From the NCBI GenBank assembly GCA_965113315.1, contig OZ220368.1: a DNA stretch of 64,000 nt; one strand, 5' to 3'. Each line of letters opens with the position of its first letter. Within the stretch, counting starts at the first letter, position 1. Position numbers and translations under genes: made by a program. Below the pieces are notes generated by a model. That model worked only from the letters and a program-made list of their open reading frames with translations. It did no database searches and was not told the origin of the DNA. Source of the DNA: Podarcis vaucheri. Lineage: Eukaryota. Shown here one piece after another: positions 4,101 to 30,036 of this stretch.

Positions 4101-7100
4101 CTTCCGATTTTTCTCTCGGGACTCTTTTTCCCCACGGGTTTTCTTCCTTTCCTCGATCCCATACATCCGATCGTGCGAATGCGTTCTTGCTTCCCTCCCC
4201 TCCTTTGCAAAGTCCCACCTGCCCAAATGCCTGCCGAGGAACTCTGGTCCCGGGACCCGAGTACACCTTCTCCCCTCTCTCTTTCCCAATTGATTCGACG
4301 AAGGAGGTCTCCTGATCCCGTCTGACTGGGGCGCACTTTTTTTAATGGAGGGTTTTTTTTTAAAGGCATCTTTTAATTTTTGTTGGAGCAGGTGGGGGAT
4401 TCCACCTAGGCGTTTCTGGAAAGAAGCAAAGGGCACCGCAAACGCTCGGAAGCTCTTTTCCTAATAGAGATGCGCAGGCGTTTAACCTGTTAAGGACGGC
4501 TGACTGCCGCCACCCGCCGCCACGTCTCCTTTTTCTGACTGCTCCCGTTTTGCGAGGCTCTGAGGACCCAGACGCCACTCAAATAAAGCACACTCCATTC
4601 TTTCCTCAGTATTGGGTGTGCCCCTCCACAGTCTCCTGTTTTTAAGAACAATTCTTCGCTCGGAGAATCTGTGGCAAAATGGCACTGCGCCTCTCACTTT
4701 ACCTTCACTAACGGTTTGCGTCGTCCTCTTTCCCTGCGCACCCCAATTTGGCTCATTTACCGTATTTCCAAAAAATGCAGGGGTTTCAACCCCACCCCTA
4801 GCAAACAGGCTAACGCGAAGGAAGGGAACGGATTTCCCTGGAAACCCAAGTTCCCAGGATAGACGGTGGTTCGAAGTCGAAGTGTGTTGTCAATTTCAAG
4901 TCAGTTGAGGAGAGAGAGGCGTTTTCTTTTTGTTTTGTTTTAAGGCAACTCTTTTCTCTGAACGGTTGACTAACCCATCACCTTTTCCGCAGTGATCCAG
5001 TCTGGAATTCACAGCCTCTTTAAAGTGGATGGGCTGTACCCGGATTAATAGGACGCAAATCGAATTAAATCCACGTTAGTTCGGATAACGTGGTGGTTTC
5101 GGATTCAAGCTATAAAATGCGCCTTCTTTTCCTTTTAGAAGTCTTCCTTCCTTCCCTCCCACCCCGACTCCCAATTCAGATTTCCCCACCCAGAAAATCG
5201 AATCTGGATTTGAGTGAAATTTGAGATAAGCTGAGAGGGTTCGGTTGCCCGTGCTTTGGTTCCCCCTCTCCAATGGTTTTGCGCTTTCTGGTTGTTCTTA
5301 CTAGGGGAAAACGAGGCAGGGTGCTGGGGGCCAGGAGCGGGAAAGATCCATGGTGTGATAGGTACGAAGAAGGTGCGGGTCTTGCTCCGATTCTCGGCTG
5401 TGACTTGATCCGATTTCTTTGTCGAGTGAATTCATTCTCTCTCCTGGGGACCGTAAGGAGAGAAACGAAGTCACCTCTTATCATGGGGATATATCCCTGG
5501 CCTCCTCTCTGTCTTTTCTCGGCCTTCTCCAATTCACTCAAGGCGGGGAAGCGTCGTTCTCTGTCAACGTCCCTACCTCGCTTGCACCACGAGAGACTTC
5601 GGTTTCCTGACCGGACTGGAGCCGCCTTTCCTTTGGGAGGGGGCGGGCGGAGAGGGTGAACTGGGTAGCCCGACCCCCCCCCCCCCATCCCTCGAGACTG
5701 ACTGGGCTGTGATGGGGAATATCTATGTTGTTGCGTCCAGCAGCAAATCCTCTTTTCCCCACCGTGTCGAAATGTAACTTGAGTATGGAACCTCGGCGCA
5801 GAGGGGAGCCCAGATCTGGACCCAAAGGGGGTTGGTTGCAAGGTGTGTGTGTGTGTTCCTTTCCCTTCCTTGGATTTGAGGAGACAGGAACTCGCCCTCG
5901 TCGCCGGTTGCCGAGCGAAAGGCGACGCTTTGGGCTAAGAACGAAAAGACAGGTTTTCTAAATTCGGAGTGGCAAGCCCCGATTTCTCTCGCCTCCTTTG
6001 TCCGCACCGCTGATGTTTTCCATATCAAGGAGTTTTCTCTTCCCGAAATGGGGTTAGAATTTTACGCAGCCTGCCTATGCACACAGGCACGAGAATTGTG
6101 CGACAGTGATTATATATTATAATGCATTTTATGAATGTGGTTTTGTATAAAACCGTTTTTAGCATGCCCTGCGCGTCACCATTCGTATACCACGTAGTGC
6201 AAACAGTTTCCTGATCACTAAACACCTAAAAGTAATTGAAAGGAGCAAGTAAATAACCAAAAGGGGGGGGGGGGAGAGAGACAGATAAACAGGAAGGGAG
6301 AGGGGAGGGGTAAAAGTGCGGAGGGAGAGGCGGAGGATAGAAAATTTAAAGAGGATTTTGCGTGGGCTATAGAAATACAAGCTTCTGGATAATATGCAAA
6401 TAATTTGAATCTTAAGCTCGGATGGTAATGCGCATTTTCTGCGGCGCTTATATTATTTTCTGTGACGCTTGCGCAGGAGAAAGGGCAGGTGCGCTGCGTC
6501 TTTCGCAGGTGTGGGAAGCGTGCTTAACCGCAGATTAGGCAGATGAAATGGTTAAGTGGCCCGTGTGGGGAAGTGTCCTCAGGGTTCCTTGTTTTCAAGT
6601 GTCTGTACCCAGAGGGGCACGGAGACTGTGGTCGAGAGGTGGGGGGCTGAATGTTTGCGCCCCATCGATTTGCTGTCGTGATGGGACCAAGCCCTGGCAA
6701 GCAGCGGCCTCTGGAGATGCAGGTTTTCTCGCGGTCTTGTTTGCGCGCCAGAGCGCGGGCGCCTTTTCCGACGCTCGGCTTTAATCTCTTTGCGCGCTTT
6801 CCAGAGATCTGTCGCGGATTCCCACTTTCCGCGCGCGCGTAGCTGGGGACAGACAAATAACCCTTTCTTCCCCCTTTACCCTAACTTCCGCTGCCTTCTG
6901 CGTGAACATCAGCCGCTCCTGTTGGAGTCTGTCAGGAAATAAGCCAAACAGGACTTCAGACCATAAACAAAATACAAACACTCGATTTTGCATTTAAGGG
7001 CATTTTGTTATTTTACATCTAGGGACATTTTAAATTCCGTTTAACTGCACCTCTTCTACACTGATGAGCGAAGAAAAAACAAATTACTGACACCGACTTA

Positions 7101-8900
7101 AATGGTCTGGGTGTCTCTGTTCTGCCGTGATTTTTGATGGCCCCCTCACTCCTTGTCCGGCGCGGGGGGGAGGGGGGAGAGAACAAAGCATTCCTGCATT
7201 TTTAAAATCTCCAGAAAATCAGCAGCCTCTTGCATTTTCGAACCACTAATTTAAAGACACAAAAATGACGGTTTCCTCACTTTCTTTTACTCGTTTTTTT
7301 AATACAGTTGCTGGGTTTTTGTGTGTGTGTTTTCTACAGCTCCAACAAAAATACAGCCACCATTCTTCCGCCCACTCCCTCCAGTTGAGACAAATAGAAA
7401 ACCATCTATAAAGTGGAAAACAACAACTTTCATTGCATTCTGTTGCTTAAAGCAAATCTCTGCTTGGCTGCTTGCCTTGTTGAAGTGGGGGAGGGGGGTG
7501 GTGGCCGGATCCTAGGAAAGCAAAAGGCACCGGGGACCCCTTTTTTGTTTTTTTTGGGTACCTACCTTCTTCGTCATTTTGGAAGCTCAGTGGAGAGAGA
7601 GGACGAAGAGACCCTCCAGTTTTGATCTCTCCTTCGGAATCTGCGTGGCTCCCACCCCCGTTTTCTTTCCCGTGGTGGGATCCCCTAGGGAGGGAGTGTG
7701 CTCTCCTAATTCCATTATATCAACTGGAGGAAAACTCGTTCTCCAGCGCCCTCCCTCTCTCCCTTCCCGTGCAATGTACTGCGCCGCAGGCAGCAGCCTC
7801 GCGTCTCCCTTCGCGGGTATGTCTTCCCTTTCCAAGTACTGCGTCTTGTATAAGTGGATCTTGCCACCGGTGGGCGAGCAAATTGTCGCCCTAAGGCATC
7901 CCAGGCGCAGACCGGATTTCAAGCCGTTTGTTCCCAACCTTTCCCTGGAAAAACTGCGAGGTAAATAACGACAGCCTCCTCCTCCTCCCGTTGTTCCTGG
8001 GCGATGATGTGAGTCCCAGCTTTGGGCCAGGTGGCTGCTGCGACAACGTGGTCGCAGGAAAAGGATCCTCAGTGGATCGCCAGAACAAGGTCCCTAACCT
8101 GAGGTCTTGGACGCAAAATAACTAGGACGCTTTTGTTGGCCACAACTCCAAGAAACTTAGTTTTTGCGGCACTCCAAAGCCGGCGTGGAACTGCATTAAA
8201 CGGAATTAATTCGCATCACCTCCGCTCGCTTAGCGTTGCACCTGGCTGTTGGGGACTGAGACGATGTTTAGCCTTCCCCATCCCCTGGCCCAGCCGTCCC
8301 CAGGGTTGCTATGTATACCCAGAGCATTTTCGCTTTATTTTGTGATATTTCCCCATTAAATTTATTCTTGTTTCGGCAAAGGGAATGAGTGGGGAAAGTT
8401 GCACAGCGCCAGCTTTTGAGGAAAATTAAGAAAGATTGCTCTCCCCTCCGCGCATCGTAGATGTGAAAATAATAACCTATGATTTGTGGTTTAGGAGAGA
8501 GATTGCTGATGGTGGTCTTAATGTAGACACCCATCATCACACCAGGGTCATCACACCAGGTGCGCAGGTTTTGAAGGTTGCATTGTGTGGTTGGTGTTCT
8601 TAAAAAGAAAAGAAAAAACGGTGTGTGTCCATAGGCCATGGGAAGCAAAGACTCTCTCGAACCACTTTCAGCTCTCGTAGAAATTATCTTTTGTCTCTGG
8701 TGGTTTCCTATCAAATGCGCCTCTAACCTCGAAAGGTTCTGGAACCCGAATCCGTGTAAAAGGCAGCATTTTGTGATGTTTTTGGCAGAGCACAGCGCAG
8801 CTCTGTTCGTGCCTGCTCAGAAGCAAGCCTCACTGAGTTGAATGGGGCTTACTCCCAGGCAAACAGGCATAGCGTTGCAGCCTTTAACTCCCACTGCGAA
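1200..8900. promoter_or_regulatory. Extended CpG-island-like, TE-depleted region (5' region / proximal intron 1 of LHX4)
   Basis: High CpG density (many CGCG/GCGC runs) and no recognisable young SINE or LINE, in contrast to the rest of the window. Typical of developmental transcription-factor loci. Boundaries approximate. Confidence 0.7.
7774..7960 (+). CDS. Candidate alternative first coding exon of LHX4 (donor at 7816 or 7960)
   Basis: ATG at 7774 (G at -3) inside the CpG island. Two phase-1 donors, CGG|GTATGT (after 7816) and GAG|GTAAAT (after 7960), both join in frame to exon 2, giving ...SPFA-E-IPQC or ...LEKLR-E-IPQC. No transcript evidence. Confidence 0.4.
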
Positions 8901-11900
8901 GGGTAAAATCTTCGGGAAACTCCTGATCCGCTTTTCCCATGCGCTGAATTTCTATGGCAATATCGCATAGCAGAAATTAAATCAATGCAACGTTGCTATT
9001 GTTGTTTTCCGTGGTTTTAAAAGGGCAGAAATTTAGAGCATGTCTTTTTCAGATCACTGAAGAGATCCTTTTCTATACATCTCTTGAGCCCACTCTGGGC
9101 TTCTCTGAATTCGTGTGCTCTAGCCCGATATTCAGTGCGCGATCCAGCCAAAGTTAATGGGAGTCCCACCGATTTTAACGAGAGAGAAACCACCACGTTC
9201 TTAACTTCTGGATTGAAATAAACGAAATTCACGGTTTAATGGCTTGGTCATGTATACTAATTGTTGCTATTTATTATTATTTTTTGTCACATAACCACTT
9301 TACTACAATTTGCTTCAAAACAATGAAAAACAGCGTTGACACACGTTATTTAAAGCCCTTGCAAAATTTGCTGAAATGAGCACTTTGTATGTAGGTTTGT
9401 GCTGCAATTTTTGCTTGCCTCCTTTTCCTTTACCCCCTTGCTTTTAAAACATCGGGGGGTGTGTGTATGTGTTTTTAAAAAACGACAGCACAGTTCTAAC
9501 CCCTTGTTATCTTGCTCTCCTCCTTTGAAACATGCAGGATTCAAATCCATTATCAGACGCCCATCTCCTCTCTATTCCAGAAAAGCCTGCCCTGGTTCAA
9601 ATAACCAAAATATGCAGGAGTAAAATGAAAATAAACAAATAAATAGATAGATACTGATGAAAGGCACATTATCCAGCCGTTGGTATGGGGATTTGTCCCT
9701 TTGTTCCCAGTACAGAGAGTAGGAGGCACACTAGGCGAGAAAAGATAATTTAAACTTTAAATTTTTCTATGCTTTAAAGTTTCAGTGACACAGCCATTTA
9801 ATGTACAATAATTTTTTTTAAAAAAATTGGTGTATCTGGAAAGACTTACACATTAGCCTTAGAAGAAACCAGTCCAGTACAAGGTAACAGCTTAGCAATT
9901 TTATATCCTCTCGTGTGTGTGTTTGTGTGTGTGTGTGTGTGTGAATCAAAATTCTGAGTATATATAGTATTCACTTTTGAATTCTGGAGAATGAATTTGC
10001 TTCATTACCTCTAAATGTGAATATGAACAGCAGCATTTATATATGCCTTCGAGAGGTAATAAATAACAATATACATTTTGCTAAGTTACTGAGCTTTCAG
10101 TATTGCAGCAATTTTACAAAAGGCAACTAAGGTTAAGAGGCAGTGAATTAATCACTCAGTGGGTCTATGGTGGAGATTAAATTTGGACTGGGATCCCTCT
10201 TAGCTTAGCACTCCAGGTACTGAATCACATTCTTTAACACTGCAGTTTTGAAAAATAGCGCACTTCTATCTTAGTGGACCACAACTATATAGGAAAATCA
10301 ACTTGAAATTGTTTGACTGTTGTGACATTTCTCTCCAAGCAATATTGGGATTATTATAGCTGAGCATAGGGTGGGAGGGACGTAGGTTGTCTCCCCAACA
10401 TAGGACTCCTATCTCTTTTGCAAAAGTATGATTACTAGGCTCTCTTGAAGAGCAGCAATATGCAGTGAAAATATCAAGAATGTTGGACAAATGCGTCTGT
10501 TTGGGACCCTAGGGCCAAGGAACAGGGTAGTCGTTCTGTTTATTGTGGATGCGGGGACATGCGTGCCAAGGACAAACTTTTAGGATTAAGCCATGGAAGT
10601 GTTTATTTAACCTGGTTTTGTCAAAGCATTGCCTGTTGTGTTTAATATCTTAAAGGCTTTTCATGCTTGGTTCTGTTCTTGGACTATGTTCTGAAACATT
10701 GCTTTTATGCACACATGTGTCTTCTTCAGAGGTGCATTGTTGTAACTTTTGAAGAGTTACTTGCATGCCTGTTTCTCTACTGAGACTTCCATAAATTGGA
10801 GCTGATTTGTTGTGGCTGCAGATTGTGTTTGTGGTGGGACAGGGGTTGCGGGAGCACAGCTTTCCACAGGGCTATTCCAGGTTCCTTCCCTAAATGTTCA
10901 GCTTCAATTAAACAAAGCTATGGACATAGCATTCTAGCCCAGGGCTCACCAATGCAGTGCTCTCCCAGGTGGTGCTAGAATCCAGCTCCCCTCTGTCTCA
11001 TCCAACATGGTCAATTGTTGGGGATGATGGGCGTTGATATTCAGCAACCTCTGAAGGTCACCAGTTTGGCTCTCCCTATTCTAGGTCCTGCTGCTGTTTT
11101 AAGACAATAAAAGGGGGTGTTCCCATGTTCTGACAAATGAGCAAAAAGCTCATTTGAAGCAGAAATGCTGTGTACTTTAAAAATGATTAAATTAAATGTA
11201 CATTTTTTAAAAAAAATTAAAATTACGGGATAACTTTTAAAATGCAACGCATATTACCTTACATTTTAAAATATTTTAAATATAAGAAAGAATTAGGAAA
11301 CCCTGGTAGCTAACAATAAAAAAGCAATCCATATTCACCTATGTTGTGTGTAGGTTTTCTTGGGCTTTGGCTTAAGGTTCCTCTCCTGCCCTACATCACC
11401 AAAATGGGAACTAGATTTTTGGATGAAAGGCAGAATAAAATAAAATGCACACATAACAAATATAAATTTAAGGAACCACGGGCAATCAGAATACATGGGT
11501 CTCAAAATGCATACCTCTCAGGGATATAGACTGCTATTTTGCAAAGGAAGGAAACAAAAAAAACAACAACCCACCTCCCTAAAATACTTGATTTTCATTG
11601 TGTTGAAGTGGCACCAGCTGTTTTTTTTTATTCAAAGTACTTTAAATCACACCATGTTCTAGTAACTTTACACCAAATTAAACTGCTCAATGGGACCTTT
11701 AATCACGTTTGTTGCTGTAAAAAAATATATACTTAGATTTAGTTTCAGGGCTAGCCCATTTTGGTGTGGTGAAAAATCCCAACGACATCTTTCCTGCTTC
11801 CACTAATTAGCGTGAGGCACAATCCATAAGGGATGCTCTCCTGTGCTGGTCTGCTTGAAATGAACAGCATCTGGGGAAACTGTTGCCTTGCAGCACGATC

Positions 11901-12880: not shown

Positions 12881-13720
12881 AAGCATGGAACAATGACTTT
12901 TGAGGTCCCTTCCAACCCTTTAATTCTATGTTTCTGTGATTAGGGACAGTTCACAAAAGGATGCAGAGAAACCTGTGGGTTTCCTGCATTTTGCCACTAT
13001 TGGGATATATTAGTTGCCACTAATATTGCATTTAGCACTTTTAATCCAGGAGCAAGGGAGGCAATCTAATAAATGAAGCACCGCTGACTGACACTTACAA
13101 ATGGCAAGCATTTCACCAATGTTCCCATGATTATTCCCTTTGACTATGGTGAGGCAGCTAAACCATCTTATTAGTGGCATGTGAATCGGAGTCCTGGAAA
13201 TTCTGATAGAACCCCAAATGCCTCCTATGATTTGCTGGCATAATTCAGAATCGTGCTGCCTTGCTCTGCCAATACAATCAGCAAAATAAAGAGTGCTAGA
13301 ACCAGCTTTCTTGAATGCCTGTCTATCTTTAGGACCAATTCAATTTATAACTGGATATTCCTGAGGTTTAGACATGTTAATCTGTGGCAGTGAAATCAAC
13401 AAAGAGTATTGCAGCGCCATAAAGATTAGCAGAAATTGTGGCATACAATTTCATGTCCCAGAGCTTGTTTCATAAGATTTATCAATTTGCGGGATATACA
13501 TGGCCACATGTGTGAACACTGAGATGAAGAGACCATGAAATAGAAAAGATACAGCAGGCCTCTGATATTTATATGTGGATTTATGTGTTTGTTGTTTGTG
13601 TGTATTTATACATAGTAAGATCAGTGAGCATCTATAACAATAGTCACTGGGCAGAACTCATTCTTTCTATATTACCTGTAGTGGAAGAAAAAAGCCCTGC
13701 TCTTGAGTAAAACCCAAATG

Positions 13721-13893
13721 CAGTGCTTTTTATGGGGGTACGCGGGGGTACGCATACCCTAAATATTGTGTAAATCTTTGTACTTTTCCATTTACTGTAT
13801 TTATTTTCCCCTATTTGAACTATAAAAAGGTAATTTTCTTTAGTCAAAATGAGAGCACCCATAAACATTTTTAAAGGGGGGGAAAAGGCACTG
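13721..13893. mobile_element. hAT-type MITE
   Basis: TIRs CAGTGCTTTT / AAAAGGCACTG. The 8-bp TSD is degenerate. Confidence 0.55.
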
Positions 13894-13973
13894 CCTAGAA
13901 GATGAATAGAACCAAATTTGCTGCTATTGTTGTTTCTGCCCCAGAATGAGAAGGTCAAAAAGCCATTCTTTGT

Positions 13974-14064
13974 GGTTGCTGGGCAACCACCGCCGCCCCC
14001 GGAAGCAGACGCGGCGCCGCGCTTCCGGTGCGGGCAGCGCCGTGCCCTCACCAAAGATGGCGGC
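13974..14064 (+). promoter_or_regulatory. Promoter-like motif cluster at the 5' end of the URM1 retrocopy
   Basis: X-box-like palindrome GGTTGCTGGGCAACC (13974-13988), inverted ETS/GABP pair CCGGAAGC (13999-14006) and GCTTCCGG (14021-14028), and YY1 motif AAGATGGCGGC (14054-14064). CpG-rich. Confidence 0.55.
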
Positions 14065-14362
14065 GCCCTTGTCCCTGCTGCTGGAGTGCGGAGGTGGAGC
14101 AGAGCTCTTGTTCGGCGGGATCAGGAAGCAGCGGGTGACTCTGCCCAGCCAGCAAGGACCTTGGGATGTCCGAAAGTTGCTGGTGTGGATGAAAGAGAAC
14201 CTGCTGAAAGAGAGGCCGGAACTGTTCGTGCAGGGAGAGTCTGTGCGGCCGGGAATCTTGGTGCTGATCAATGGGGCAGATTGGGAGTTGATGGGCGAGT
14301 TGGACTACCTGCTCCAAGACCAGGATAACGTCGTTTTCATCTCCACCTTGCATGGTGGATAG
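14057..14362 (+). CDS. URM1: URM1 (ubiquitin-related modifier 1) intronless retrocopy, intact 101-aa ORF
   Basis: [21 protein letters not shown]...[51 protein letters not shown]. Same length as vertebrate URM1, retains the C-terminal GG, strong Kozak context (AAGATGG), no introns. Confidence 0.93.
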
Positions 14363-17300
14363 ACTGCTGGGAGTATGGAAAAGAACATTTGTGCTGGTGG
14401 GCAGAGGGCATAAACATGCCTTGCTCTCCTGGCTGTCACCCCAGATCAGAGTCGGTTTCTCATTAGCTTCTTTTCTTAATGAAGTCTGCCCTTTCGACGC
14501 TTGGCTCCTCCCACCCAGTGGTTCAGCTCTCTCCTCTTTTGTCCCAGAAGGAGATCGAAATCCTTTCTGCACCTGGTCACCCTCTTCCCTGCTCCAAGAG
14601 GTTCATGCCATGGGACAAGTGGCTGGAAAGGAGCCGCTTTGCACGTGGCTGTCGCCCTTGTTTGCTTTCTTCTCCTTGGCGGCAGGGAAATGCCTGTGAT
14701 CAAAGAGGGGATCTCCCTTTCCTTCCAATCCAAGCCTTGGATCTGGTTGCAGCCATTAACAGTCATTAAGGGATATGGGGCGCATGCAAGGAAGATGGCA
14801 GATGCAAGACTCCCTCAGCCTATCTGCTCTTGATTTGCCATGCATGGATTTCAGTTCTGTGACTCAGTTTTGAAAAGTACCCAGCTAGAACCAGCTCACA
14901 AATGGTTACTTTGAATTTTGATGACTAATGAAGTATACTTTTGCCTGCCTTTTTTTTAAAGAAGAAGAAACTTGATGACCCTCAGAGTCCGTTCCAGCTC
15001 TACAGTTCTATGATGCTCTATTTTTTAATCTTCTGGTGGCACTGCCTGATCCTGTTCTGCCACAGCTGCTGTGTATGCATGCGATTGATTTCCCTTTCCA
15101 AATTGTCTGCTCTGCACTGTTCTGTCGCAAAGTGTTTTGCAATGTGTTGCAGAAGACGGAGTGCTTCATTTGAAGCTGGGTGTTCCGGACTCAGGTTCTG
15201 CCTCAGTCATGTACTTACTTCACTGGGTGGCCTTGAGCAAGTTGCGCTCTCTGTTAACTTCAGTTCCACATGTGTAAAGTGAGATTTGAAATGATTGACT
15301 CTGCAGGATGGTTTTGACAATAAACAATAAAAGTTGTGGAAACAAAAACAACACAAAATTCATTCTTTGTCAATGGTCAATTGTAATTAATTTAATGCAT
15401 GTTTTGAACATGCAACTTTGGTTATGTATTTAATTATTTGCAAAAATCAAATAGGCTATGTTGTTTGTACCTATTTGAATCTGTGAAGGACATACATAAT
15501 ATCAAATAGGTTATGGCTTTCAGAATGAAGGCTGAGTGGGTGGTTGCTAATTTCCAAATTGTGCAAAAGTGGAAGAATGACACAACTTTAATTGAAGGCG
15601 TGGAAGATGCTAATAATGGATAAAGTATTGCACCAATGGAAGGTAGCATTTTAACCCCAGATTTAATTATTGGAAAAAGGATTCCTGTTTCTAACTGAGC
15701 AGCTTGGAACAATAATAGACCACCCAGACTCTCATCCACGAGGATTTACTGAATTGAATATTGCCGTTGTCACTTGACCTTTGGTTTATGTACCTGAATA
15801 AATCACTAATTTTACTTCAAGTATTATGTTACTTTATAGATCTGCAAGGGATGCTGTTTAGGTGAAAATTTTTATGAAATCCCAAAGAGCTAAAAAGGAC
15901 AACAAATTCTAAAAAGCTAAGGCAAGGTGTTATCTTTTATATATAACCTGAAACAGATTCACCCTGCTCAGTGAAAAATGAATGCAGTTTGAACAGTCTA
16001 GAAAAACCTCCTATAAGAGTCTCAGAACTTGCTGTTTCTGTAGGAGAAATAAGTTATGAGAATGTCTTTCCAGCTGTCCTTGTTGCATGAACTTGACCAC
16101 ATGTCATAAAGAGAATGTTTCTCACAAAACATAATATGTAAAGGAAAGTAGGGGAGAGATGTAACCCTCAGACAGGGAATCTGGGGTGAAAGTCACTTAG
16201 GGATTTGTAAGGAATCCCTCATCCTTTGGATCACTTAACCTATAATAAAATTCATCTAAATTTGGCACCAAGAAAGCCACAATTCTGCACTTCAGACAAA
16301 AGAATGGCACTAACAAGCAGCATGCAGACACCTGATTTGTGGCTTTGTAACTGAGTTGTTGCAAGAAGGAATTGTGTTGGAGGGGAGCAGGGGGAAAGGC
16401 AGAGAAATAAGGAATGGGAGGTAAAAATGATGGATGATGGATGGTATGGATGTGCTTATAGCTGAGAGCCTAGAGGAAGTTTCACATTTCAAAGCAGGGG
16501 CCAGAATCTCTGGCCCTGAGAACTGGGGCCATTTCTAGAGGCAGCTTGTATGTTTTCAAGCACAATCTCGTTAGTCCTCATTAGCGACGCAAACCAATCC
16601 AGAGTCCAGGACACTCACATTTACCCCAGCTGCCTTCATCCTCTAAATTTAAATTTGAGGGCAGACAGCTGTGTTTTGCTTTTGTTATCCTTTAGAATAC
16701 CATTTTACATGGACGGTGTTCCATAAATACATAGTGTACTATAAGGTAATAATTATTATTAATAATATAATTCCATAAACATTTGGGAAAGTTTGAAAGT
16801 GAGATTAGATCCTGCAGAATCCATGGCCAATGTCAGATTCTGTCCCAGACCTCAGAAGATCTGTACATGGAAAAATCATAGAAGATAAACAACTCTGTCA
16901 TGGGGGTGGGGGTGAGTGGGTCAAGCCCAGCACCTTAAATCATAGCCCTGCAGAAAGCTCCAGATTAGGACACCACAGCAGATTGTGTTGACATAGGATG
17001 CTCTTGACAACTGGTCCTGTTTAGCAGGCATGTTCCACAATGCAACGCAGGAAAGTCTCCTGAAAATCCATGGGTACCTGATATGATCCATGCTACGCCT
17101 TCTTTGTGGAACCAGAGCAGTTAAGATGCGATTGATCAGCAGGTTGTATTGCCATCACAGCTTCTCTGCATGCTACTTCAAAGGCAAAGGCAATGTCATG
17201 AGGCGGAGGGAAGGAGGCTGCCTTGTGAATTATGGCATCATTATTATGCAAATAAACAGCACTTCTTTGGGAATTGATAGGATTTTGCGCAGGATCATTA

Positions 17301-17807: not shown

Positions 17808-18006
17808 CATAGACAAATGTTCAGATCTGGGTTTTCATTGTTGTGCATCAACTTGATGTACACGTTACCTTGGCCATTGGCCCTTCTCTCCATCTCTCCC
17901 TGGCTATGGGCTTTGTACCCCTTTAGAAGAACTGGCAAATAACTGCTGCAGTATCCAGCCCATTGTGTCATAATAAGGATTTCAACCAAGCCCTTAAACA
18001 CATGAC

Positions 18007-18348
18007 CATAGGCGCCGACTCCATGGGGCCTGAGGGGGCCCGAGCCCCCTCAAAAATTCGTTTGGGGGGGCTCTGCCCCCCAATAATCTCGGGCGCCCCT
18101 CCAGCAGAGCGCCACCGCCGCCCCTCCCCCAGCCCAAAATGCACAGGGTCGGGCTGCATGCCTCCTGCCCTCCCTCCCGAGCAAAAGCTCCACCCAATTT
18201 CCTTCGGAGCTGATTAATAGGCGCAGCACGCTCTCCCCTATTCGCTCACGAGGAGGCGGCGGCACTTTATCTGCATATTCATGAGCTTATTTATTATTCA
18301 TGAGCTTTCGCGGGCTCCCCCAATATTTTTTATAAGTCAGCGCCCCTG
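18007..18348. mobile_element. hAT-type MITE
   Basis: TIRs CATAGGCGCCGACT / AGTCAGCGCCCCTG and perfect 8-bp TSD CACATGAC. Confidence 0.88.
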
Positions 18349-19636
18349 CACATGACAACTGTGTTGGAGGAGTCACTTTTCCGACAGTAAATCTCATTCC
18401 CAAAAGCCAGGCATTCTGTTTCCAAGAGTAATCAGCTGAATGACTCTGGGGTGTTTGCAAGCCCTCATTGTTTGTCTCCAGCATGTGGTTTTCTGTGTTT
18501 AGAGGTTGTATAGAGCTCTCCTTGCTGATAACTGATGATAGAGCTGCTCTGCTGTTTTTTAGGATCAGTTGTGTGACGCTAAACTCTCTCTCTCCTCTTG
18601 CTATGTCTCCTATCAGTTTTCCCAGGTTAGTAGAGTTGTTCTTAATTCCTTCTGCTTAATGCTTCCTTTCCAGAACTTGAAGAAATGATGTTTAAGGATG
18701 CAAAGTTAAGTAAATAAAAAGCAAATTGATTTTCGAGGATTATCTGAACTTGAAAAAGTGTGAAAAAAACCATAATCAATCTGATTTAAACCCAACAACC
18801 CTTTAATTGCTTCCACGCTTTGATCTCCTAGCCAGGGGTAACATTTTTAGGGTTGAATTATGAACCTCTCCATTATGGAAACACTGACAGAATCTTAACT
18901 AGAGTGGCATGGGTGGATCTGTGATGATCAATGGAGGATAGAATTGTACCATGCAACTCTAGTTGAGATTCAGTTGAAGTCAGTTTGCGCATTGCATCAA
19001 TGATGACTGGGAGTTGTTTAATAATCACAATCACAATCTTTTCTACATTCAGATATACTCACAGCACTGTTGCAATATGCAAGTTTGGCAGTGGTGATGA
19101 CGGTGATGTTCAGCCTTAGGCTGGCGAGTTGCCAATTTTGCATGTGATGGATGGCATTCCCCCCCCCAAAGGACAACCTGCATGCCTTGTGTGTTCTCCT
19201 GGACCCTGAATTGCTGCTGGATTTTCAGGTGCTGGCAGTGCCCACGGCTGCTTCTCTTTGATAAAGATTTGGCTGTGAATCACCTATGCGTTCGTAATAT
19301 CTCATGTTGACTATTGCAAGGTGAGCTGTTGCCAGATGGAGGTACTGCCTTTCAAGATGGCTCAGGACCTTCAGCTATTGCAGAATTCCATGTCTCTCCT
19401 CTTGTAAGAGTGGCCACGCAGCATTTCACCCACAATCTTGCTCAGCTCTGTGTATTAGCTTCCAGGCCCGGCTCAAAGTGCTGGTGGTGATCTTTAAAAT
19501 TGGCTTGGTCTGTGGCCTCTCTATGTTTTAGAGATGCCACTTCCTGGGGAATCCCTCAGATCTGCTGGGGAAGCTTTTTTTTAGAGAGAAGTGAAGCCTC
19601 TAAAGGTATAGGAAGCGATACTTTTACCCGCACTCT

Positions 19637-19902
19637 GCCAGTGTGGTGTAGTGGTTCAGAGCGGTGGACTCGTAATCTGGTGAACCAGGTTCGCTTCCCC
19701 ACTCCGCCACGTGTAGCTGCTGGGTGACCTTGGGCCAGTCACACTTCTTTGAAGTTTCTCAGCCCCACTCAGTGTTTGTTGTGGGGGAGGAAGGGAAAGG
19801 AGAATGTTAGCCGCTTTGAGACTCCTTCGGGTAGTGATAAAGCGGGATATCAAATCCAAACTCCTCCTCCTCCTCCTCCTCCTCCTCCTCTTCTTCTTCT
19901 TC
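19637..19902 (+). mobile_element. Squam3 SINE
   Basis: tRNA-like head GCCAGTGTGGTGTAGTGG, body ending GATATCAAATCCAAAC, (CCT/CTT)n tail. Confidence 0.85.
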
Positions 19903-20286
19903 CACAATACCTTGCCGGCAGAGGCATTTTCGCCGTCATTCCAGTGATTAAATAAAAAATGGCTTTGTAAGCAAGGCTTCTGTGGCTTTCAGTGTGAAGC
20001 TGGCTTCTCCCTCTACCACTGGGATTCTGTTGACCTTTCTATGGATGTTTTAGTACAGATTGTTTGACTTGCTGATTTGTGTTTCAAATTGCGTTTTAAA
20101 ATTTGTTTCATTACTGTGATTTATTGTTGTTTTACTCGTATCGTACATTGCCTCAAGTGCCAAACTGTAGGCAGAGAATGCACACTTTCTATCTATCTAT
20201 GGCCCACTATACAATACCATTGTACAGATTTCTCTGGTAATGTATAGAAAGGACTCTGAATGCTCAAAGCACTATATAAATGTTTA

Positions 20287-20639
20287 GGTAAAGGTAAAGG
20301 GACCCCTAACCATTAGGTCCAGTCGGGGACGACTCTGGGGTTGTGGCGCTCATCTCGCTTTATTGGCTGAGGGAGCCGGCGTACAGCTTCTGGGTCATGT
20401 GGCCAGAATGACTAAGCCGCTTCTGGTGAACCAGAGATGTGCATGCAAACGCCGTTTACCTTCCTGTCGGAGCGGTACCTATTTATCTACTTGCACTTTG
20501 ATGTGCTGTCGAACTGCTAGGTGAGCAGCAGCTGGGACTGAGCAACAGGAGCTCACCCCGTCATGGGGATTCGAACCGCCGACCTTCTGATCGACAAGTC
20601 CTAGGCTCTGTGGTTTAACCCACAGGCCACCCATGTCCC
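20287..20639 (-). mobile_element. Sauria SINE (Squam1)
   Basis: tRNA-derived head, conserved body, (ACCTTT)n tail. Confidence 0.9.
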
Positions 20640-20941
20640 TTCCGTGTTTAGTTGCTATTAAAATAGGCGTCTACAATAAATCAAGTTATTTTTAAAATTC
20701 TGTTGATTAAATTATGCAGCTCTAATTTTTTATTTTATTTGTACATCTTTAATTTCAAGCACAGTAAGTCACAATAGACTGATTATGCCATCAGTATGCT
20801 TCATTGTGTGTTCTGTACACGGCAACTTCCTGCAACTGATTAGGATCAAATTCTGCAACTGTGTTACGGGAGATGCTTCCCCTTGCTTAAGTCAGCACTT
20901 TAGGGCATCATTGAAGTTCTGCCCACTTGATTGACATCACT

Positions 20942-20955
20942 GTTTCCATGGCAAC
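20942..20955. promoter_or_regulatory. RFX X-box motif
   Basis: GTTTCCATGGCAAC is a near-perfect X-box palindrome in unique sequence. Confidence 0.4.
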
Positions 20956-21404
20956 TAATGCACTTCAAGGAGAAAACAGAGCATGGTTTTATTTTCTTTT
21001 TTTTAAAGGGGGACTAAAATCAGTAGCATAAACAAAATCCGCAGTGTTGGGGATGCTATAAAGTTTTCATTGCCACTTATTGGGGAAAGCTGCATAACTC
21101 ACTGACATTTCGGGAGCCTACGCAGTCTCAACTAGCTCAGGGCAATAAAAAATTTATAGGGCCCAAGTCTGCATTAATTATGGCTTGCACACAACACTTC
21201 CCATTGAAATGCATGGGCGGGCTGAGTAAATAAGGAAGTTTCGCATCAGGACCAGTGCAATCCATCTCTCTAGGGAAAGGAGAAGAGTTGAAATGTATGC
21301 TGGGCAGTTAAAGAGGTGGACATCTAGTGGGGAGTGCATATATATAATGTTTATAGAAGCTTCTGGAAATCAGCCAGACAGAAGTCAGTCTGCCTCTTTG
21401 ACAG

Positions 21405-21845
21405 TCTTCTTCTTCTTTGGTGATCACTCGTAGCTGAGTAAGATTGTCTTCCATGAACACAGTCTTAACAGTGAGTCCGTAAGTGACTGTGGAGGCCAAG
21501 TCTGGATCCACACATCCTTCCACAGGCAGGAGTTTCCAGGCAGGAGTTGATCACAGTGAGGGTTTGCCAAGCATGCCTTCCTCTTAGCTTGTTTCTCCCT
21601 TTCGTCCCGAGTTCGAGCGTCTTCAAAGTCCACAACACCTTTGGTAAAGGCTGTTCTCCAACTGGAGCGCTCGCAGGCCAGTGTTTCCCAGTTGTCGGTG
21701 TTTATACTACATTTTTTTAGGTTTGCCTTGAGAAAGCCTTTGAACCTCTTTTGTTGACCACCAGCATTACGCTTTCCATTTTTAAGTAGTTGCTTTGGAA
21801 GACGATCATCAGGCATCCGAACAACATGACCAGTCCAATGAGTTG
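21405..21845 (-). mobile_element. RTE-clade LINE 3' fragment with (GAA)n tail
   Basis: Translates to WTGHVVRMPDDRLPKQLL...GGQQKRFK...LKKCSINTDNWETLACERSSWR. Confidence 0.85.
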
Positions 21846-22280
21846 CTGCCTAGGGACAGGTGGAGCTTCTCAGCTTGCCTTAATGTCCTGAGGACACATG
21901 CTTGCACTTGGTCTGGTGTATAGATTCTGAAGAACAAAGGTCCACATGCAGAAACAGTTGAATCTGACTTCAGTGCTGGCAATGAGCCAACAGCCTCCAT
22001 TGCTCTTGAGAGCAGTGCCTTAGTTTAGGGGCCGGGGTGCGCACAGGTCTGTAGTCCAACAGAGTGGAACAGCTGAAGAACTAATGCTGTTCCCCTCAGC
22101 CCCCCCCCCCGGGATCTGTCTCCTGAGGCAGCTGCTTCACTCTGCCAATTGGTAGAGCTGCCCCTATTTCCAAGGCAAGGGGTACAAGCATGAGTGTTGC
22201 CTCAGTAATAGTCTTCCATGAATATGTCCTGATGTGTGGGTCCAGTTACAGATAGGTAGCCGTGTTGGTCTGCCATAGTA

Positions 22281-22469
22281 AAAATAAAAAAATTCCTTCC
22301 AGTAGCACCTTAAAGACCAACTAAGTCAGTTCTTGGTATGAGCTTTCGTGTGCATGCACACTTGTTCAGATACCTGGTATCTGAACAAGTGTGCATGCAC
22401 ACGAAAGCTCATACCAAGAACTGACTTAGTTGGTCTTTAAGGTGCTACTGGAAGGAATTTTTTTATTTT
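22281..22469. repeat. Perfect palindrome (94-bp arms, 1-nt loop at 22375) from a Penelope-like element terminus
   Basis: 22281-22374 is the exact reverse complement of 22376-22469. It is preceded by GGTAGCCGTGTTGGTCTG, typical of the termini of squamate Penelope-like elements. Confidence 0.85.
22376..22415 (+). ncRNA. Minimal type-I hammerhead ribozyme motif with a variant core (mirror copy on the - strand at 22335-22374)
   Basis: Stem I GGTAT/ATACC, core CTGAACA (canonical CUGANGA), stem II GTGTG-CATG-CACAC, GAAA, then GC-TC cleavage site. Confidence 0.6.
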
Positions 22470-22600
22470 GGCTGATGTGTGGGGTATGAGAGAAAGAGGG
22501 GTTCGGTAGGCAATGCCACCAACTGAAGAGGTTTGTTTTAAAAGGGTTGCTTTTGGTGATGCTACAATATTGCTATTGTTACCAGGTGCACCAACTCTGT

Positions 22601-22944
22601 GGGACACGGGTGGCGCCGTGGGTTAAACCACAGAGCCTAGGACTTGCCGATCAGAAGGTCAGTGGTTCGAATCCCCGCGACGGGGTGAGCTCCCGTTGCT
22701 CGGTCCCTGCTCCTGCCCACCTAGCAGTTCGAAAGCGTGCAGTGCAAGTAGATAAATAGGTACCACTCTGGTGGCAAGGTAAACTGCGTTTCCGTGCGCT
22801 GCTCTGGTTCCTCAGAAGCGGCTTAGTCATGCTGGCCACATGACCCGGAAGCTGTATGCCGGCTCCCTCGGCCAATAAAGCGAGATGAACGCCGCAACCC
22901 CAGAGTCGGTCACAACTGGACCTAATGGTCCCTTTACCTTTACC
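22601..22944 (+). mobile_element. Sauria SINE
   Basis: Full length, with TSD TGCACCAACTCT(G/A)T. Confidence 0.92.
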
Positions 22945-23114
22945 TGCACCAACTCTATGGGGCTGAGGCCTCTCCCGGTGTGACAGTTGTCACACGTGTG
23001 ATGTGTGTAATGGCACACACAATGTGTGCAGGATTTCAGCCCCCCCCCCATCAATGTTGGGTACATCTCAGCGCCTGTGGTTATCATTTTCTCAGAGGCC
23101 AGAAAAGCCTAGAG

Positions 23115-23252
23115 CAGCCTTTCTCAACCTGTGGGTCCCCAGATGTTGTTGAACTACAACTCCCATCACCCCTAGCTAGCAAGGCCAGAGCTCAGGGATG
23201 ATTGGAGTTGTAGTCCAACAACATCTGGGGACCCACAAGTTGAGAACTGCTG
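23115..23252. mobile_element. Palindromic hAT/Charlie-type MITE
   Basis: Nearly fully self-complementary (ACTACAACTCCCATCA...TGATTGGAGTTGTAGT), with 8-bp TSD GCCTAGAG. Confidence 0.88.
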
Positions 23253-23936
23253 GCCTAGAGCCTAGACCCTAGCTTTTAGATGCTGTGCTGAACTGACTGG
23301 GAATTCTGGCACCTTTCCCCACCCTCCTTTCAGATTATCTCCTCACTCAAACAGTTGTGGGGCTCAATGAAAATGTTGTTTGAACAGGTTGTTAAAAGAG
23401 AGGACATTGTCTTGTGTCGTCTTCTGAATCATGCAAGGACCCTTCTTCCAGCACTTAGCTTCTCTGAAAGACACTGACTTAGGGTTAAAGGAGTAGGTCC
23501 ATTAGCTGGTAACCTAATCAGATCTGTGGCTGCTGAAAGCAAGCTCAGCTACACATGAGAGAGAGATTGAGAGGATGGAGGAGACTACCTAAGTGCTCAT
23601 AAGTTGGACAAAGGAGGGAGATAACAAGGTTCATATTAGTTAAGCGAGGAAAAATGTTCCCTTGATGTAAATAAATGGCAACAGACTCCCAAATCTCAGC
23701 TTGATGCACAGCTGTTGCTGCTTCTAGGCCAGATTATCAGGTGCAATTTGTTACAGTTTGAAGAGGCGATTAATATTTGCTAGTGCAAGGTTACGCAGCT
23801 TTTGAGTTTTCTCTGAATGTGTTGTTTCACTGCCTTTGGGATGCTGATGAAGAATTCTGAGAACAAGGCACATACTAAAGTTGATTCAGTAAGCCTTACT
23901 TATGTTGCATTTCATAATTTTATTCTGTGGAGCTTG

Positions 23937-24306
23937 TGTTATGTACTGAGTTGAATAGGATCCAAACTGCAGCAGTCTGATTGGTCCTAGAACAATAGGA
24001 TTCAGAATGCAGCAGTCTGATTGGTCCTAGAACAATAGGATTCAGAATGCAGCAGTCTGATTGGTCCTAGAACAATGCAGCAGTATGATTGGTTGGCAGG
24101 AACCACCCAATCCTGCTCCAGATAGAAGTGAATCCACAACCTGATTGGCTTACAGTAGAATTCCAGAATTAGCCAATCATGTGCAGCCCACTGTGTAAAT
24201 AATGTATATAAAGCAGATACTTTGAGGGGACTTTCATTCATTCCTCCTCACCACTATGAGCTGAATAAAGAGCATGAAATCACTTTGCGACTCTGAGTAT
24301 ATTTCA
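23937..24306 (+). mobile_element. Solo LTR
   Basis: TG...CA termini, 5-bp TSD GCTTG, ~3 tandem 40-bp units containing ATTGG (CCAAT box), TATATAAA at 24205 and AATAAA at 24264. Confidence 0.85.
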
Positions 24307-24840
24307 GCTTGTTTTGTACATATGCAGTTCAGTGAAATAGTACTCCTACAATGAGATAGGTGGTTCAGGGAATTAAGGAGAGCATGAGCGTTTTGAGTTA
24401 GACTGATGCAGAAGTAGAGCTGCCTTTGGTAGTACCCATGTTTCATGAGTGGTTGGAGGCAGGGTTCTGACATGTGTTTTGATGCACAGTTAAGCACCTA
24501 TTTGTGAGCAATGGAGAAGGTGGGCAGGAATGGGGAGGGAGAGTTATCTATCCAGATTCATAACTGAGCTTAACACTGTTTCACACATACATGCTTCTCA
24601 GGCGATGACAATAGCAAGGGATGAACTGCATGTGAAACGGCTACTACAGGCAGAACTTTCATATCACCTTGGAATCAGAAAAACAGTTGGCTGGATTAAA
24701 CTAACCTGGCAGGCTAGTAGGAGCCATCACAAGGGCTCATTTTTATGCATTTAGCACCGTCATATTTTTGGTCAGGGCGTCTTCTAGGAGCCATAGGGGA
24801 GAGCTATGTAATGGATACCAACTACATATTTTTGGTCATA

Positions 24841-25204
24841 AAGGTAAAGGTCAAGGTACCCCTGACCATTAGGTCCAGTCGTGGACGACTCTGGGGTTGC
24901 ACGCTCATCTCGCTTTACTGGCCGAGGGAACTGGCGTTTGTCTGCAGACAGCTTCCGGGTCATGTGGCCAGCATGACTAAGCCGCTTCTGGTGAAACCAG
25001 AACAGAACACGGAAATGCCATTTACCTTTCTGCCGGAGCGGTACCTATTTATCTACTTGCACTTTGACGTGCTTTTGAACTGCTAGGTGGACAGGAGCTG
25101 GGACCAAACAACGGGAGCTCACCCTGTTGCGGGGATTCGAACCACCGACCTTCTGATCTGCAAGCCCTAGGCTCTGTGGTTTAGACTACAGCGCCACCCG
25201 CGTC
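24841..25204 (-). mobile_element. Sauria SINE
   Basis: High similarity to the other copies, with ACCTTT tail. Confidence 0.9.
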
Positions 25205-25266
25205 ATGTTAATTTGGGTAAATGAGTAGGGCCCCCCCGCAAAGGGCTGAACACATGGCCCCACATA

Positions 25267-25499
25267 CAGTGGTACCTCGGATTACAGACGCTTCAGGTTA
25301 CAGACTCTTCAGGTTGCAGACTCTGCTAACCCAGATATAGTACCTTTGGTTAAGAACTTTGCTTCAGGATGAAACAGAAATCGTCCAACGGTGGCAGCAG
25401 GAGGTCCCATTAGCTAAAGTGGTACTTCAGATTAAGAACACTTTTAGGTTAGGATCGGACCTCCGGAACTAATTAGGTTCTTAACCCGAGGTACCACTG
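25267..25499. mobile_element. Tc1/mariner (Tigger-like) MITE
   Basis: TA|CAGTGGTACCTCGG...CCGAGGTACCACTG|TA. Confidence 0.88.
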
Positions 25500-25654
25500 T
25501 ACCATAAACCATCCACTCGCCACCAACATGCAACAGAAACAGGCTGGCAGTTCCTGCCATATGGTCCACACCATTGCAGTTTAAGCAATATTGAAGTGCT
25601 AACTGGGGATCCCATTTTTCCTGTGTCAAATTATTGCAGTTTGCGTTGCTGGGG

Positions 25655-25657
<3 letters not shown>

Positions 25658-25696
<39 letters not shown>
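25658..25696. repeat. (GT)n microsatellite
   Basis: Seen directly. Other microsatellites: (GT)n ~9913-9942, (ATT)n ~40330-40378 and ~47184-47228, (CA)n ~55058-55082. Confidence 0.95.
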
Positions 25697-25697
<1 letters not shown>

Positions 25698-26293
25698 TGA
25701 TATTCTTCCAAAATAAGAGTTTCCACAAGGAAAGCATTCAGATCTCCCTACTCTCCATTGCTTATCAGATGTTTATTTCATGTGCTGAACCTGAAAGGTC
25801 CCAAGAGTCTTAAGAAACAATTCTAAAATGTGTTTGGAGCACCAAGCAAATTCTCTGCCCAGGCAGTTTCAGTTTCTCTGAAGGACAATGAAACACTTTG
25901 AAGTTTCAGGAGCAAAGTACTCAGGATGTTCTGATATTAATGATGTGCAAAGTGCCCGATTAAGACATTTTCCAAATCCCTAGTCAATTCCGAGAATCCT
26001 GGAGAGTCATTAATCTCTCTCATATTTAGCACTCTAACATTTTAAGGTATTGCTTCCTATTTTTTCCACAATACTGGTCAAGAGTCAGATTGAAAAGAGC
26101 CAAACACATAAAAGCTTCTAAGGCTATTCCTGGGGCCTTAAAAAAGCCCCACTTTAAAAAAAAATATTTGTAATATAAGAGGCTTATGAAATAATTATAG
26201 GCCTGTAAGGTGTGCCAAAGCCATATGAAAAATTTCCCCTAATTTTATTGAAATTCCTTCACCTCCTCTTTCCTAAATATGTTTCATCTAAGC

Positions 26294-26448
26294 CAGGAAT
26301 GGCCAAACTTGGCGCTCTGCTCCAGATGTTTTGGGCCTCCAGATGTTTTGGGACAACTCCCATCATCCCTAGCTAACAGGACCAATGATCAGGGATGATG
26401 GGAATTGTAGTCCCAAAACATCTGGAGGGCCAAGTTTGGCCATGCCTG
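26294..26448. mobile_element. Palindromic hAT/Charlie-type MITE
   Basis: TIRs CAGGAATGGCCAAACTTGGC / GCCAAGTTTGGCCATGCCTG and TSD ATCTAAGC. Confidence 0.85.
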
Positions 26449-26973
26449 ATCTAAGCAGAGCCTTCCAAATTCTCCTTATATTGTATTTTACCATTTTTAA
26501 AAAGCCCTTCTCAAATTACCTACAGATGTTTCATGCAATAGTTTCACATACCCTCCAACATTTCTCTGATGAAACTAGGTGTCAGAGACCAGGCTGAGGA
26601 GTATAACTCTGTTGAGGAATGGCCTGCTCATGGCTATGATCCTGAAACTCCACAGGAGCAGTGGAGTAGTGTTGATTTGGAACAATGGTTTGCTGAGGGG
26701 CACAGATCGGAGGACTATAGCTGGGCATAACTGGGAGGTGAACAGCAAGAAGAACGGGAAGAGAGTGAGCTAACCGACTCTTACTGGAAGATGTGCAGCC
26801 TCTCAGTCCCAAGGCTAGGAGATTAGATACTTAACAAAAGGTTCAGTGGTTGAGAATTTTTACTATTTATACCCCTTTTATACATCTTACTGGGTTGCCC
26901 CAGCCACTCTGGGCAGCTTCTAACATATATAAAAACATAATAAAACATTAAACATTAAGAAAATTTCCCTATA

Positions 26974-27215
26974 CAGTGGTACCTCCGGTTACATACGCTT
27001 CAGGTTACATACGCTTCAGGTTACAGACTCTGCTAACCCAGAAATAGTGCTTCAGGTTAAGAACTTTGCTTCAGGATGAGAACAGAAATTGTGCTCCGGC
27101 GGCACGACGGCAGCAGAAGGCCCCATTAGCTAAAGTGGTGCTTCAGGTTAAGAACAGTTTCAGGTTAAGAACAGACCTCTGGAACGAATTAAGTACTTAA
27201 CGCGAGGTACCACTG
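26974..27215. mobile_element. Tc1/mariner (Tigger-like) MITE, same family as 25267
   Basis: TA TSD, CAGTGGTACCTC TIRs, inserted in an older repeat. Confidence 0.88.
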
Positions 27216-27540
27216 TACAGGATTGCCTTCAGACAGCTTGGGGATCAGATAACTCTGACATTTCGCCAATGGAAATAGGGACATCCTAAGGAAAAGCGGG
27301 ACATTCTGGGATCAAATGAGAAACTGGGATGGCTTCTCTAAATCAAGGACGTCCCTGCAAAATAGACTTGGTCTGGTTTCAGGGCCAAGGGCTCAAGGCA
27401 CTATAGCAGTAAATGTGCATTATGTGGGGCTGCCCTTGAATTTGGTCTGGAAGCATCAGCTAGTACAGAATACTGCTGCACAGTTACTTTGTGGGGCGTC
27501 CCATCACCACTGTTAAAAGCATTGTGCTAGTTGCTAATCT

Positions 27541-27966
27541 TAGTGATGTATGGAAGTGAGAGCTGGACCATAAAGAAGGCTGATCACAGAAGAATTGATG
27601 CTTTTGAATTATGGTGCTGGAGGAGACTCTTGAGAGTCCCATGGACTGCAAGAAGATCAAGCCTCTCCATTCTGAAGGAAATCAGCCCTGAGTGCTCACT
27701 GGAAGGACAGATCCTGAAGCTGAGGCTCCAGTACTTTGGCCACCTCGTGAGAAGAGAAGACTCCCTGGAAAAGACCCTGATGTTGGGAAGGATGGAGGGC
27801 GCAAGGAGAAGGGGACGACAGAGGACGAGATGGTTGGACAGTGTTCTCGAAGCTACCAGCATGAGTTTGACCAAACTGCGGGAGGCAGTGGAAGACAGGA
27901 GTGCCTGGCGTGCTCTGGTCCAGGGGGTCACAAAGAGTCGGACACGACTAAACGACTAAACAACAA
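27541..27966 (+). mobile_element. Bov-B LINE 3' fragment (inserted in an old L2 fragment)
   Basis: Translates to MYGSESWTIKKADHRRIDAFELWCWRRLLRVPWTARRS...VTKSRTRLND. CAA tail and 12-bp TSD AGTTGCTAATCT. Confidence 0.92.
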
Positions 27967-28177
27967 AGTTGCTAATCTGCTACTGAACTACATTCAAGGT
28001 ACGGAAAGCCCTCTATTGTTCTGCAGGAGGGTATCTGAAAAGCCACCTCTTCTCCACATCCTAACTCGGATACTTTGACCTGTGAATGAAAATCCGTCGA
28101 TTGTGCCACATGCCACTTTAGATAAAGCATGCTGTGATTTGAGCATATGCTTCCAGTATTGTGGTACCAGTTCATTA

Positions 28178-28540
28178 GCGACACGGGTGGCGTTGTGGGT
28201 TAAACCACAGAGCCTAGGACTTGCTGATCAGAAGGTTGGCGGTTCAAATCCCTGCGACGGGGTGAGCTCCTGTTGCTCGGTCCCAGCTCCTGCCCACCTA
28301 GCAGTTCGAAGCCAAGTCAAAGTGCAAGTAGATAAATAGGTACCGCTCTGGCGGGAAGGTAAACGGTGTTTCCGTGTGCTGTTCTGGTTCGCCAGAAGCG
28401 GCTTAGTCATGCTGGCCACATGACCCGGAAGCTGTACGCCGGCTCCCTCAGCCTATAGAGCGAGATGAGCGCCGCAACCCCAGAGTCAGTCACGACTGGA
28501 CCTAATGGTCAGGGGTCCCTTTACGTTTACCTTTACCTTT
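28178..28540 (+). mobile_element. Sauria SINE
   Basis: Full length, with TSD CCAGTTCATT. Confidence 0.92.
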
Positions 28541-30021: not shown

Positions 30022-30036
30022 CACCAGATGGCGCTG
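30022..30036 (+). promoter_or_regulatory. CTCF-like motif
   Basis: CACCAGATGGCGCTG resembles the CTCF core consensus. It lies in a TE-free, locally CpG-retaining segment. Confidence 0.45.

Follow-up and report, generated by a model that had tools for sequence, protein, structure and literature searches.

The 64,000-nucleotide stretch of Podarcis vaucheri DNA analysed here in full (the window; contig OZ220368.1 of assembly GCA_965113315.1) carries on its plus strand, at 13974–15358, a processed retrocopy of the URM1 gene that amounts to a complete messenger RNA (mRNA) copy. An initial annotation, made from the sequence alone, had described at this place an intron-less URM1 open reading frame (ORF) of 101 amino acids with a C-terminal GG, a 3′ untranslated region (UTR) of ~1 kb, two AATAAA signals, an A-tail, 16-bp target-site duplications differing at two positions and retained CpG dinucleotides, and all of these features were recovered (Table 1). 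The ORF matches the Pfam family PF09138 (Urm1) with E = 3.3e-35 over profile positions 3–96 of 96, and its protein can be aligned over its full length with the structures 1WGK and 1XO3 of mouse URM1. The 10-nt core of the target-site duplications occurs in the 64 kb only at the two borders of the copy, against a chance expectation of 0.3, and the N-terminal extension of P0002, a protein predicted from the contig of a related species, translates as if its 5′ repeat had kept the letters of the 3′ repeat, which fits a true duplication followed by decay. The CpG observed/expected ratio falls from 1.03 in the 5′ UTR to 0.58 in the coding sequence (CDS) and 0.28 in the 3′ UTR, with values of 0.16–0.24 in the flanks.

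Table 1. Positions of the URM1 retrocopy, its parts and the neighbouring features in the window.
Feature	Position	Strand	Description and evidence
Candidate mini-exon, 11 codons then GT donor	10023–10055	+	tblastn match of the P0091 N-terminus, E = 0.009; 3.9 kb upstream of the copy
5′ target-site duplication	13958–13973	+	16 nt; direct repeat, 14/16 positions shared with the 3′ partner
Retrocopied 5′ UTR	13974–14056	+	83 nt, 76% GC; parent similarity from 13975
Inverted ETS-core pair (CCGGAAG / CTTCCGG), predicted element	13999–14028	+	one match in the window versus 0 in 100 shuffles
YY1-like motif AAGATGGCGGC overlapping the start codon	14054–14064	+	one exact match; about one match with at most one mismatch expected by chance
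URM1 ORF	14057–14362	+	101 codons and stop; C-terminal LHGG
Retrocopied 3′ UTR	14363–15339	+	~980 nt; parent-type mRNA contigs align with ~7–11% difference and several small indels
High-copy interspersed repeat fragment in the 3′ UTR	14970–15014 (45 nt)	+	DNA word depth ~16000 versus ~25 nearby; loose ends on both sides
Two AATAAA polyadenylation signals	15319–15324, 15326–15331	+	sequence; RNA depth stops at ~15300
Decayed poly(A) tail, A-rich 19-mer	15340–15358	+	sequence
3′ target-site duplication	15355–15370	+	16 nt; partner of the 5′ repeat
LHX4 exon 2 (LIM domain 1)	34732–34903	+	matches LHX4 fragments of the representative library at 96–98% identity
LHX4 exon 3 (LIM2)	~60.2 kb	+	same strand as the copy, downstream

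Two further observations concern the body of the copy. Its 5′ UTR has no in-frame stop, and an ATG at 13946 in the flank extends the ORF to 138 aa (13946–14362), a form that P0002 represents at 153 aa with a start yet farther out; the extended ORF is probably untranslated, since the RNA contigs described below begin downstream of its ATG. In addition, contigs of both the parent gene and the copy break at the repeat fragment of the 3′ UTR, suggesting that the parental UTR carries this repeat too.

The parent was traced in X19, a DNA run from a related species, in which copy-type contigs differ from the window by 0.8–1.9% and continue into both flanks, whereas parent-type pieces differ by 8–13% and each lie within a longer, otherwise non-matching contig. 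These parent-type pieces are confined to 13975–14091 (on a 1733-nt contig), to the sequence from 14293 onwards (starting at position 400 of a 652-nt contig) and to 15047–15291. As they stop at 14091 and resume at 14293, introns must follow nucleotide 35 and precede nucleotide 237 of the CDS, and the multi-exon parent expected by the initial annotation is thus found, interrupted where the copy is continuous. Similarity to the parent begins with the first bases past the 5′ duplication (13975), indicating that nothing upstream of the parental transcript was copied, and X19 held no third URM1 locus at a likeness of at least 85%.

Several lines of evidence suggest that the parent lies on the Z chromosome. 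Human URM1 is located at 9q34. The lacertid parent URM1 proteins, 89–90% identical to the window ORF, are encoded on contigs of 47–51 Mb. The Z of P. lilfordi measures 50.7 Mb and aligns with the Z of P. muralis and Lacerta agilis (PMC10214862), and the counterparts of the lacertid Z are 4p and 17 in chicken and 9 and X in human, HSPA5, LRRC8A and ANGPTL2 being among the genes it carries (PMC6534595). In X19, the word depth of the parent contigs (7–15; records 11, 12 and 15) is 0.3–0.6 of that of the copy and its flanks (21–27; records 9, 10, 13, 14 and 16), as expected for a Z-linked gene in a ZW female. Contig size, Z homology, the human location and X19 depth taken together make it likely that the parent URM1 is Z-linked.

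The insertion is old, as the initial annotation had proposed, and is shared with Lacerta agilis. RefSeq already holds two 'URM1-like' models of the same 101-aa family, XP_053247310 from P. raffonei (98% identical to the window ORF) and XP_033007203 from L. agilis (7 of 101 residues different, ~93% identical, same 90% cluster), and the annotation of P. lilfordi models the copy locus as well. The L. agilis and Podarcis copies have six replacements in common that set them apart from every lacertid parent (F11C, D20G, Q26R, R34G, N40K and D73G), implying that the insertion is older than the Lacerta/Podarcis split; by sequence, the two RefSeq models almost certainly represent the same insertion as the copy in the window. 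UTR divergence between copy and parent amounts to ~7–11%, compared with only 1–3% at the same locus between Podarcis species. No relevant URM1 retrogene was found in the literature searched. The locus is already present in automatic annotation and undescribed in that literature, the two RefSeq entries being automatic models without published description.

The copy is transcribed in three Podarcis species, as a unit starting inside or at its own 5′ end. Two runs, X1 and X3, contain continuous parent-type contigs across the parent exon junctions (records 3 and 17, respectively), and hold cDNA because these parent contigs are spliced; the 'RNA?' label of both runs is a tool's guess, and their RNA nature is taken from the spliced parent contigs. 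Beside them stand copy-type contigs, with 1 difference from the window in 217 nt and a depth of 4.7 versus 10.2 for the parent in X1 (record 4), and with 13 differences in 479 nt and a depth of 41.6 versus 68 in X3 (record 18). Copy-type RNA therefore reaches ~0.5–0.6 of the parental depth in the two RNA assemblies, contig depth being a poor gauge of expression level. Further copy-type pieces extend to ~15295, and depth is zero in the bin 13937–14027, made up of upstream flank, the 5′ duplication and a little over 50 nucleotides at the start of the copied 5′ UTR. In X23, a raw single-cell RNA run, all reads are in the sense direction; every read is of parent type at 14688–14837, and at 15132, near the 3′ end, the parent-specific 2-nt deletion is present in 5 of 11 reads and absent from the rest, some reads matching the copy with 0–1 further differences. 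The copy-specific RNA that the initial annotation had suggested looking for is thus found as copy-type contigs in X1 and X3 and as copy-type raw reads in X23.

We hold it extremely unlikely that the locus is a silent, dead pseudogene whose copy-type reads are mis-assigned parent reads or DNA contamination, even if none of the runs listed is both recorded as RNA and indexed with this stretch. Copy-type and parent-type contigs differ at dozens of diagnostic places where the copy-type ones match the DNA of the locus, and contaminating DNA would cover the flanks too. The diagnostic differences and the lack of flank coverage led us to reject this as the main account.

A second source of copy-type RNA could be the gene in which the retrocopy may lie. 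LHX4 exons 2 and 3 are found downstream on the same strand, the copy being in sense orientation 20.4 kb upstream of exon 2, and to this extent the placement in LHX4 intron 1 given by the initial annotation holds. Exon 1, on which its other half depends, was not located: tblastn of the whole window with the canonical LHX4 exon 1 peptide of P0135 rose nowhere above chance level and motif searches were also empty, the LHX4 matches from the representative library being mostly fragments with intron-derived N-termini. A position within intron 1 is plausible but unproven, and holds only if exon 1 precedes the window start. Upstream of the copy, the P. lilfordi gene model splices the mini-exon of Table 1 to a polypyrimidine/AG acceptor at 13943–13944, 14 nt before the 5′ target-site duplication, and so reaches a frameshifted copy; no RNA support for the mini-exon or for this acceptor was seen in the three RNA runs.

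The window holds other features around these genes. Just upstream of the copy, 13718–13872 is a SINE-like high-copy interspersed repeat (DNA word depth ~187,000 versus ~25 nearby) where RNA reads map to both strands and numerous loose ends fall at 13787 and 13872. Short CpG-island-like stretches are frequent in 1–8100 and 18000–33600 (e.g. 1301–2100, 6501–6900 and 33101–33600), none of which holds the canonical LHX4 exon 1. A (TG)n microsatellite occupies 9911–9944, and 128 N at 46027–46154 mark an assembly gap or masked sequence.

The sense orientation upstream of LHX4 exon 2, the spliced upstream exon of the P. lilfordi model, an X3 contig that continues past the poly(A) site to 15764 at a depth of 9.7 and the restriction of copy-type X23 reads to the vicinity of the 3′ end would all suit copy-type RNA that came from unspliced LHX4 transcripts or from read-through out of upstream sequence, with the A-rich tail perhaps as priming site. 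We nevertheless judge such an origin very unlikely. Depth is zero in 13300–13663, as in 13937–14027, in all three RNA runs, and the sole upstream signal between them, at 13664–13936, falls on a high-copy repeat. LHX4 encodes a narrowly expressed transcription factor, and for this reason its intron should not reach the RNA depth of the copy body, which is about half that of a housekeeping mRNA. Reads from an LHX4 intron were accordingly set aside as the main account, on the zero upstream depth and the depth of the copy itself.

How the copy came to be transcribed may be read from its 5′ end. A CpG observed/expected ratio of 1.03, kept over such a time, suggests a germline-unmethylated island, and the 5′ UTR contains an inverted ETS pair and, over the ATG, a motif that we take to be YY1-like. 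Contigs of parent and copy both begin at 14038–14051; contig ends are not transcript starts, and the promoter inference is weak to that extent. The copy may, on these tentative grounds, be driven by ETS/YY1 core-promoter motifs carried in its own 5′ UTR.

Whether the protein is under selection is a separate question. The 17 replacements reconstructed in the Lacerta/Podarcis clade fall at variable positions (mean entropy 1.22 versus 0.60–0.66 under the null, p = 0.001–0.002; p = 0.02–0.03 without sites 33 and 34), and the same tendency marks the replacements that precede the Lacerta/Podarcis split and those that follow it (p ~ 0.01 and 0.03). Positions conserved at 90% or more received 6 replacements versus 10.4 expected (p = 0.03) and change about three times more slowly than the others. 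No Podarcis copy has a change in its last 28 residues, and 37 of the 39 positions invariant in vertebrate URM1 are kept in the window ORF. At the protein level the frame is open in L. agilis, P. raffonei and the species of P0002; as to indels (stops aside), the copy contig of organism B has none over the whole CDS and that of organism A none over the first 204 nt. On these grounds we lean slightly towards a coding sequence under relaxed but real purifying selection, with an omega that would be ~0.5–0.6.

Several observations weigh against this reading, in addition to the cautions on the 'RNA?' label and on contig ends given above. Protein evolution is accelerated, with 7–10 unique replacements in the copy versus 0–1 in the parent (exact p 0.002–0.07 depending on the outgroup), and the ten replacements on the window lineage equal the neutral expectation at d = 0.045–0.06, i.e. 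half the UTR divergence. The two exceptions among the invariant positions, F11C and I45M in Podarcis, affect residues invariant in 75 vertebrate URM1 sequences, and the L. agilis copy has replaced the invariant G13 (G13S) as well as the nearly invariant D37. A 303-nt frame would survive such divergence by chance with a probability of ~0.07–0.25, and in the window lineage its openness carries no weight, because the locus was chosen for its open ORF. Rough pairwise dN/dS values of ~0.3–0.7 are inseparable from the 0.5 expected of a neutral copy beside a constrained parent, these being record-level counts on 40 of 237 difference rows. The P. lilfordi protein follows the +1 frame of the window up to codon 23 and the URM1 frame thereafter (switch at codon 23–24), implying a 1-bp deletion that would end the ancestral frame at codon 27. 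Finally, no P. muralis URM1-like protein appeared among the protein-search hits.

These points feed the strongest rival, a transcribed processed pseudogene that carried its promoter along, whose protein is unneeded and whose ORF owes its openness mainly to chance and is no longer intact in P. lilfordi. The neutral replacement count, the single-lineage survival probability of the ORF, the loss of invariant residues, the strong rate asymmetry relative to the parent and the uninformative intact frame are all as this account would have them, and we regard it as a real possibility from which we nonetheless lean away. It does not predict that replacements avoid conserved positions in both periods, nor the unchanged last 28 residues, nor frames that are open or free of indels in the several species and organisms named above. 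The P. lilfordi assembly is Nanopore-based with Illumina polishing (PMC10214862), and its 1-bp indel could for that reason be an assembly error.

The claims of the initial annotation on this point are thus divided. An expressed second URM1 gene, rather than a dead pseudogene, agrees with the transcription, the age and the avoidance of conserved sites, and not with the neutral number of replacements or the changes at F11, I45 and G13; the preserved ORF is present in the window and is, by itself, weak evidence given its odds of chance survival; and of the frameshifted orthologues that it named as evidence against itself, the P. lilfordi model appears to be one, by 1 bp.

The reading that we favour, by a modest preference, is an expressed retrogene under relaxed constraint, derived from an L1-type URM1 retrocopy and transcribed by itself. 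Under this reading, before Lacerta and Podarcis parted, an L1-type event would have placed a processed copy of the multi-exon, very probably Z-linked URM1 in sense orientation ~20 kb ahead of LHX4 exon 2. The source mRNA would have begun upstream of the parent's main start site, and the copy would thereby have taken along a CpG-rich piece of core promoter with the inverted ETS pair and the YY1-like site at the ATG. The copy would then form a transcription unit by itself, with polyadenylation directed by the AATAAA signals it carries. Its product, if it is translated, would be a 101-aa beta-grasp URM1 paralogue with an unchanged C-terminal stretch and GG end, which MOCS3 may activate and which may act, like the parent, in tRNA U34 thiolation or in urmylation.

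Retroposition is well known to supply new genes, and that URM1 has been copied is no surprise in itself. The usefulness of this copy could lie in a combination of a probably Z-linked parent, a seemingly own core promoter, expression comparable to that of the parent in several species and a datable history in Lacerta and Podarcis, perhaps also in Zootoca. This makes it a tractable case for asking how long a redundant housekeeping paralogue stays under relaxed constraint. In practice, RNA-seq quantification of lacertid URM1 should separate the two loci, which differ by ~8–11% and may cross-map.

Compared with known URM1 proteins, the copy resembles the parental vertebrate form in being a full-length beta-grasp Urm1 domain with a C-terminal GG, a motif required for adenylation and thiocarboxylation, and is 74–77% identical to mammalian URM1 (~76% to the two mouse structures). 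It departs from the lacertid parent in being intron-less, in lying on another chromosome, in its 10–11 replacements (two of them at positions invariant in 75 vertebrates) and in evolving many times faster.

A further comparison is with the Zootoca vivipara URM1-like protein XP_034989264 (P0011), likewise an intact 101-aa paralogue, encoded on a chromosome of similar size (98 Mb, versus 95–100 Mb for the others). The six replacements that define the Lacerta and Podarcis copies are all absent from it. One of the positions it has changed is invariant (R64L) and another is G in 63 of 75 vertebrates (G12R), and its five private changes are not biased away from conserved sites. Judged from its sequence, it may be a second, independent and younger retrocopy, in which case Lacertini may have gained such a duplicate on two occasions. 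If it is instead orthologous, six replacements on the stem are too many for the short internode, which would suggest that the copy changed in a burst soon after it inserted.

Retrogenes to which a portion of the parental CpG promoter has passed have reportedly been discussed by Carelli et al. (2016). The copy shares with them a CpG-rich 5′ end, core-promoter-like motifs and an apparent start inside the copied sequence, with the difference that the start is placed here by contig ends and CpG retention only.

A last comparison is with the out-of-X retrogenes of mammals and Drosophila, which the copy resembles in that its parent probably lies on a differentiated sex chromosome and the copy itself is autosomal, but the system here is ZW. 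Birds and Lepidoptera are reported to show no excess of gene movement off the Z (PMC3242482). The copy could be an 'out-of-Z' retrogene, an autosomal duplicate under its own promoter of a housekeeping gene that is Z-linked and acts in tRNA thiolation, kept to compensate for the single dose of ZW females or for silencing of the Z at some stage of the germline, an idea that we consider speculative and rather unlikely. The locus offers a tractable case for asking whether ZW systems export genes from the Z.

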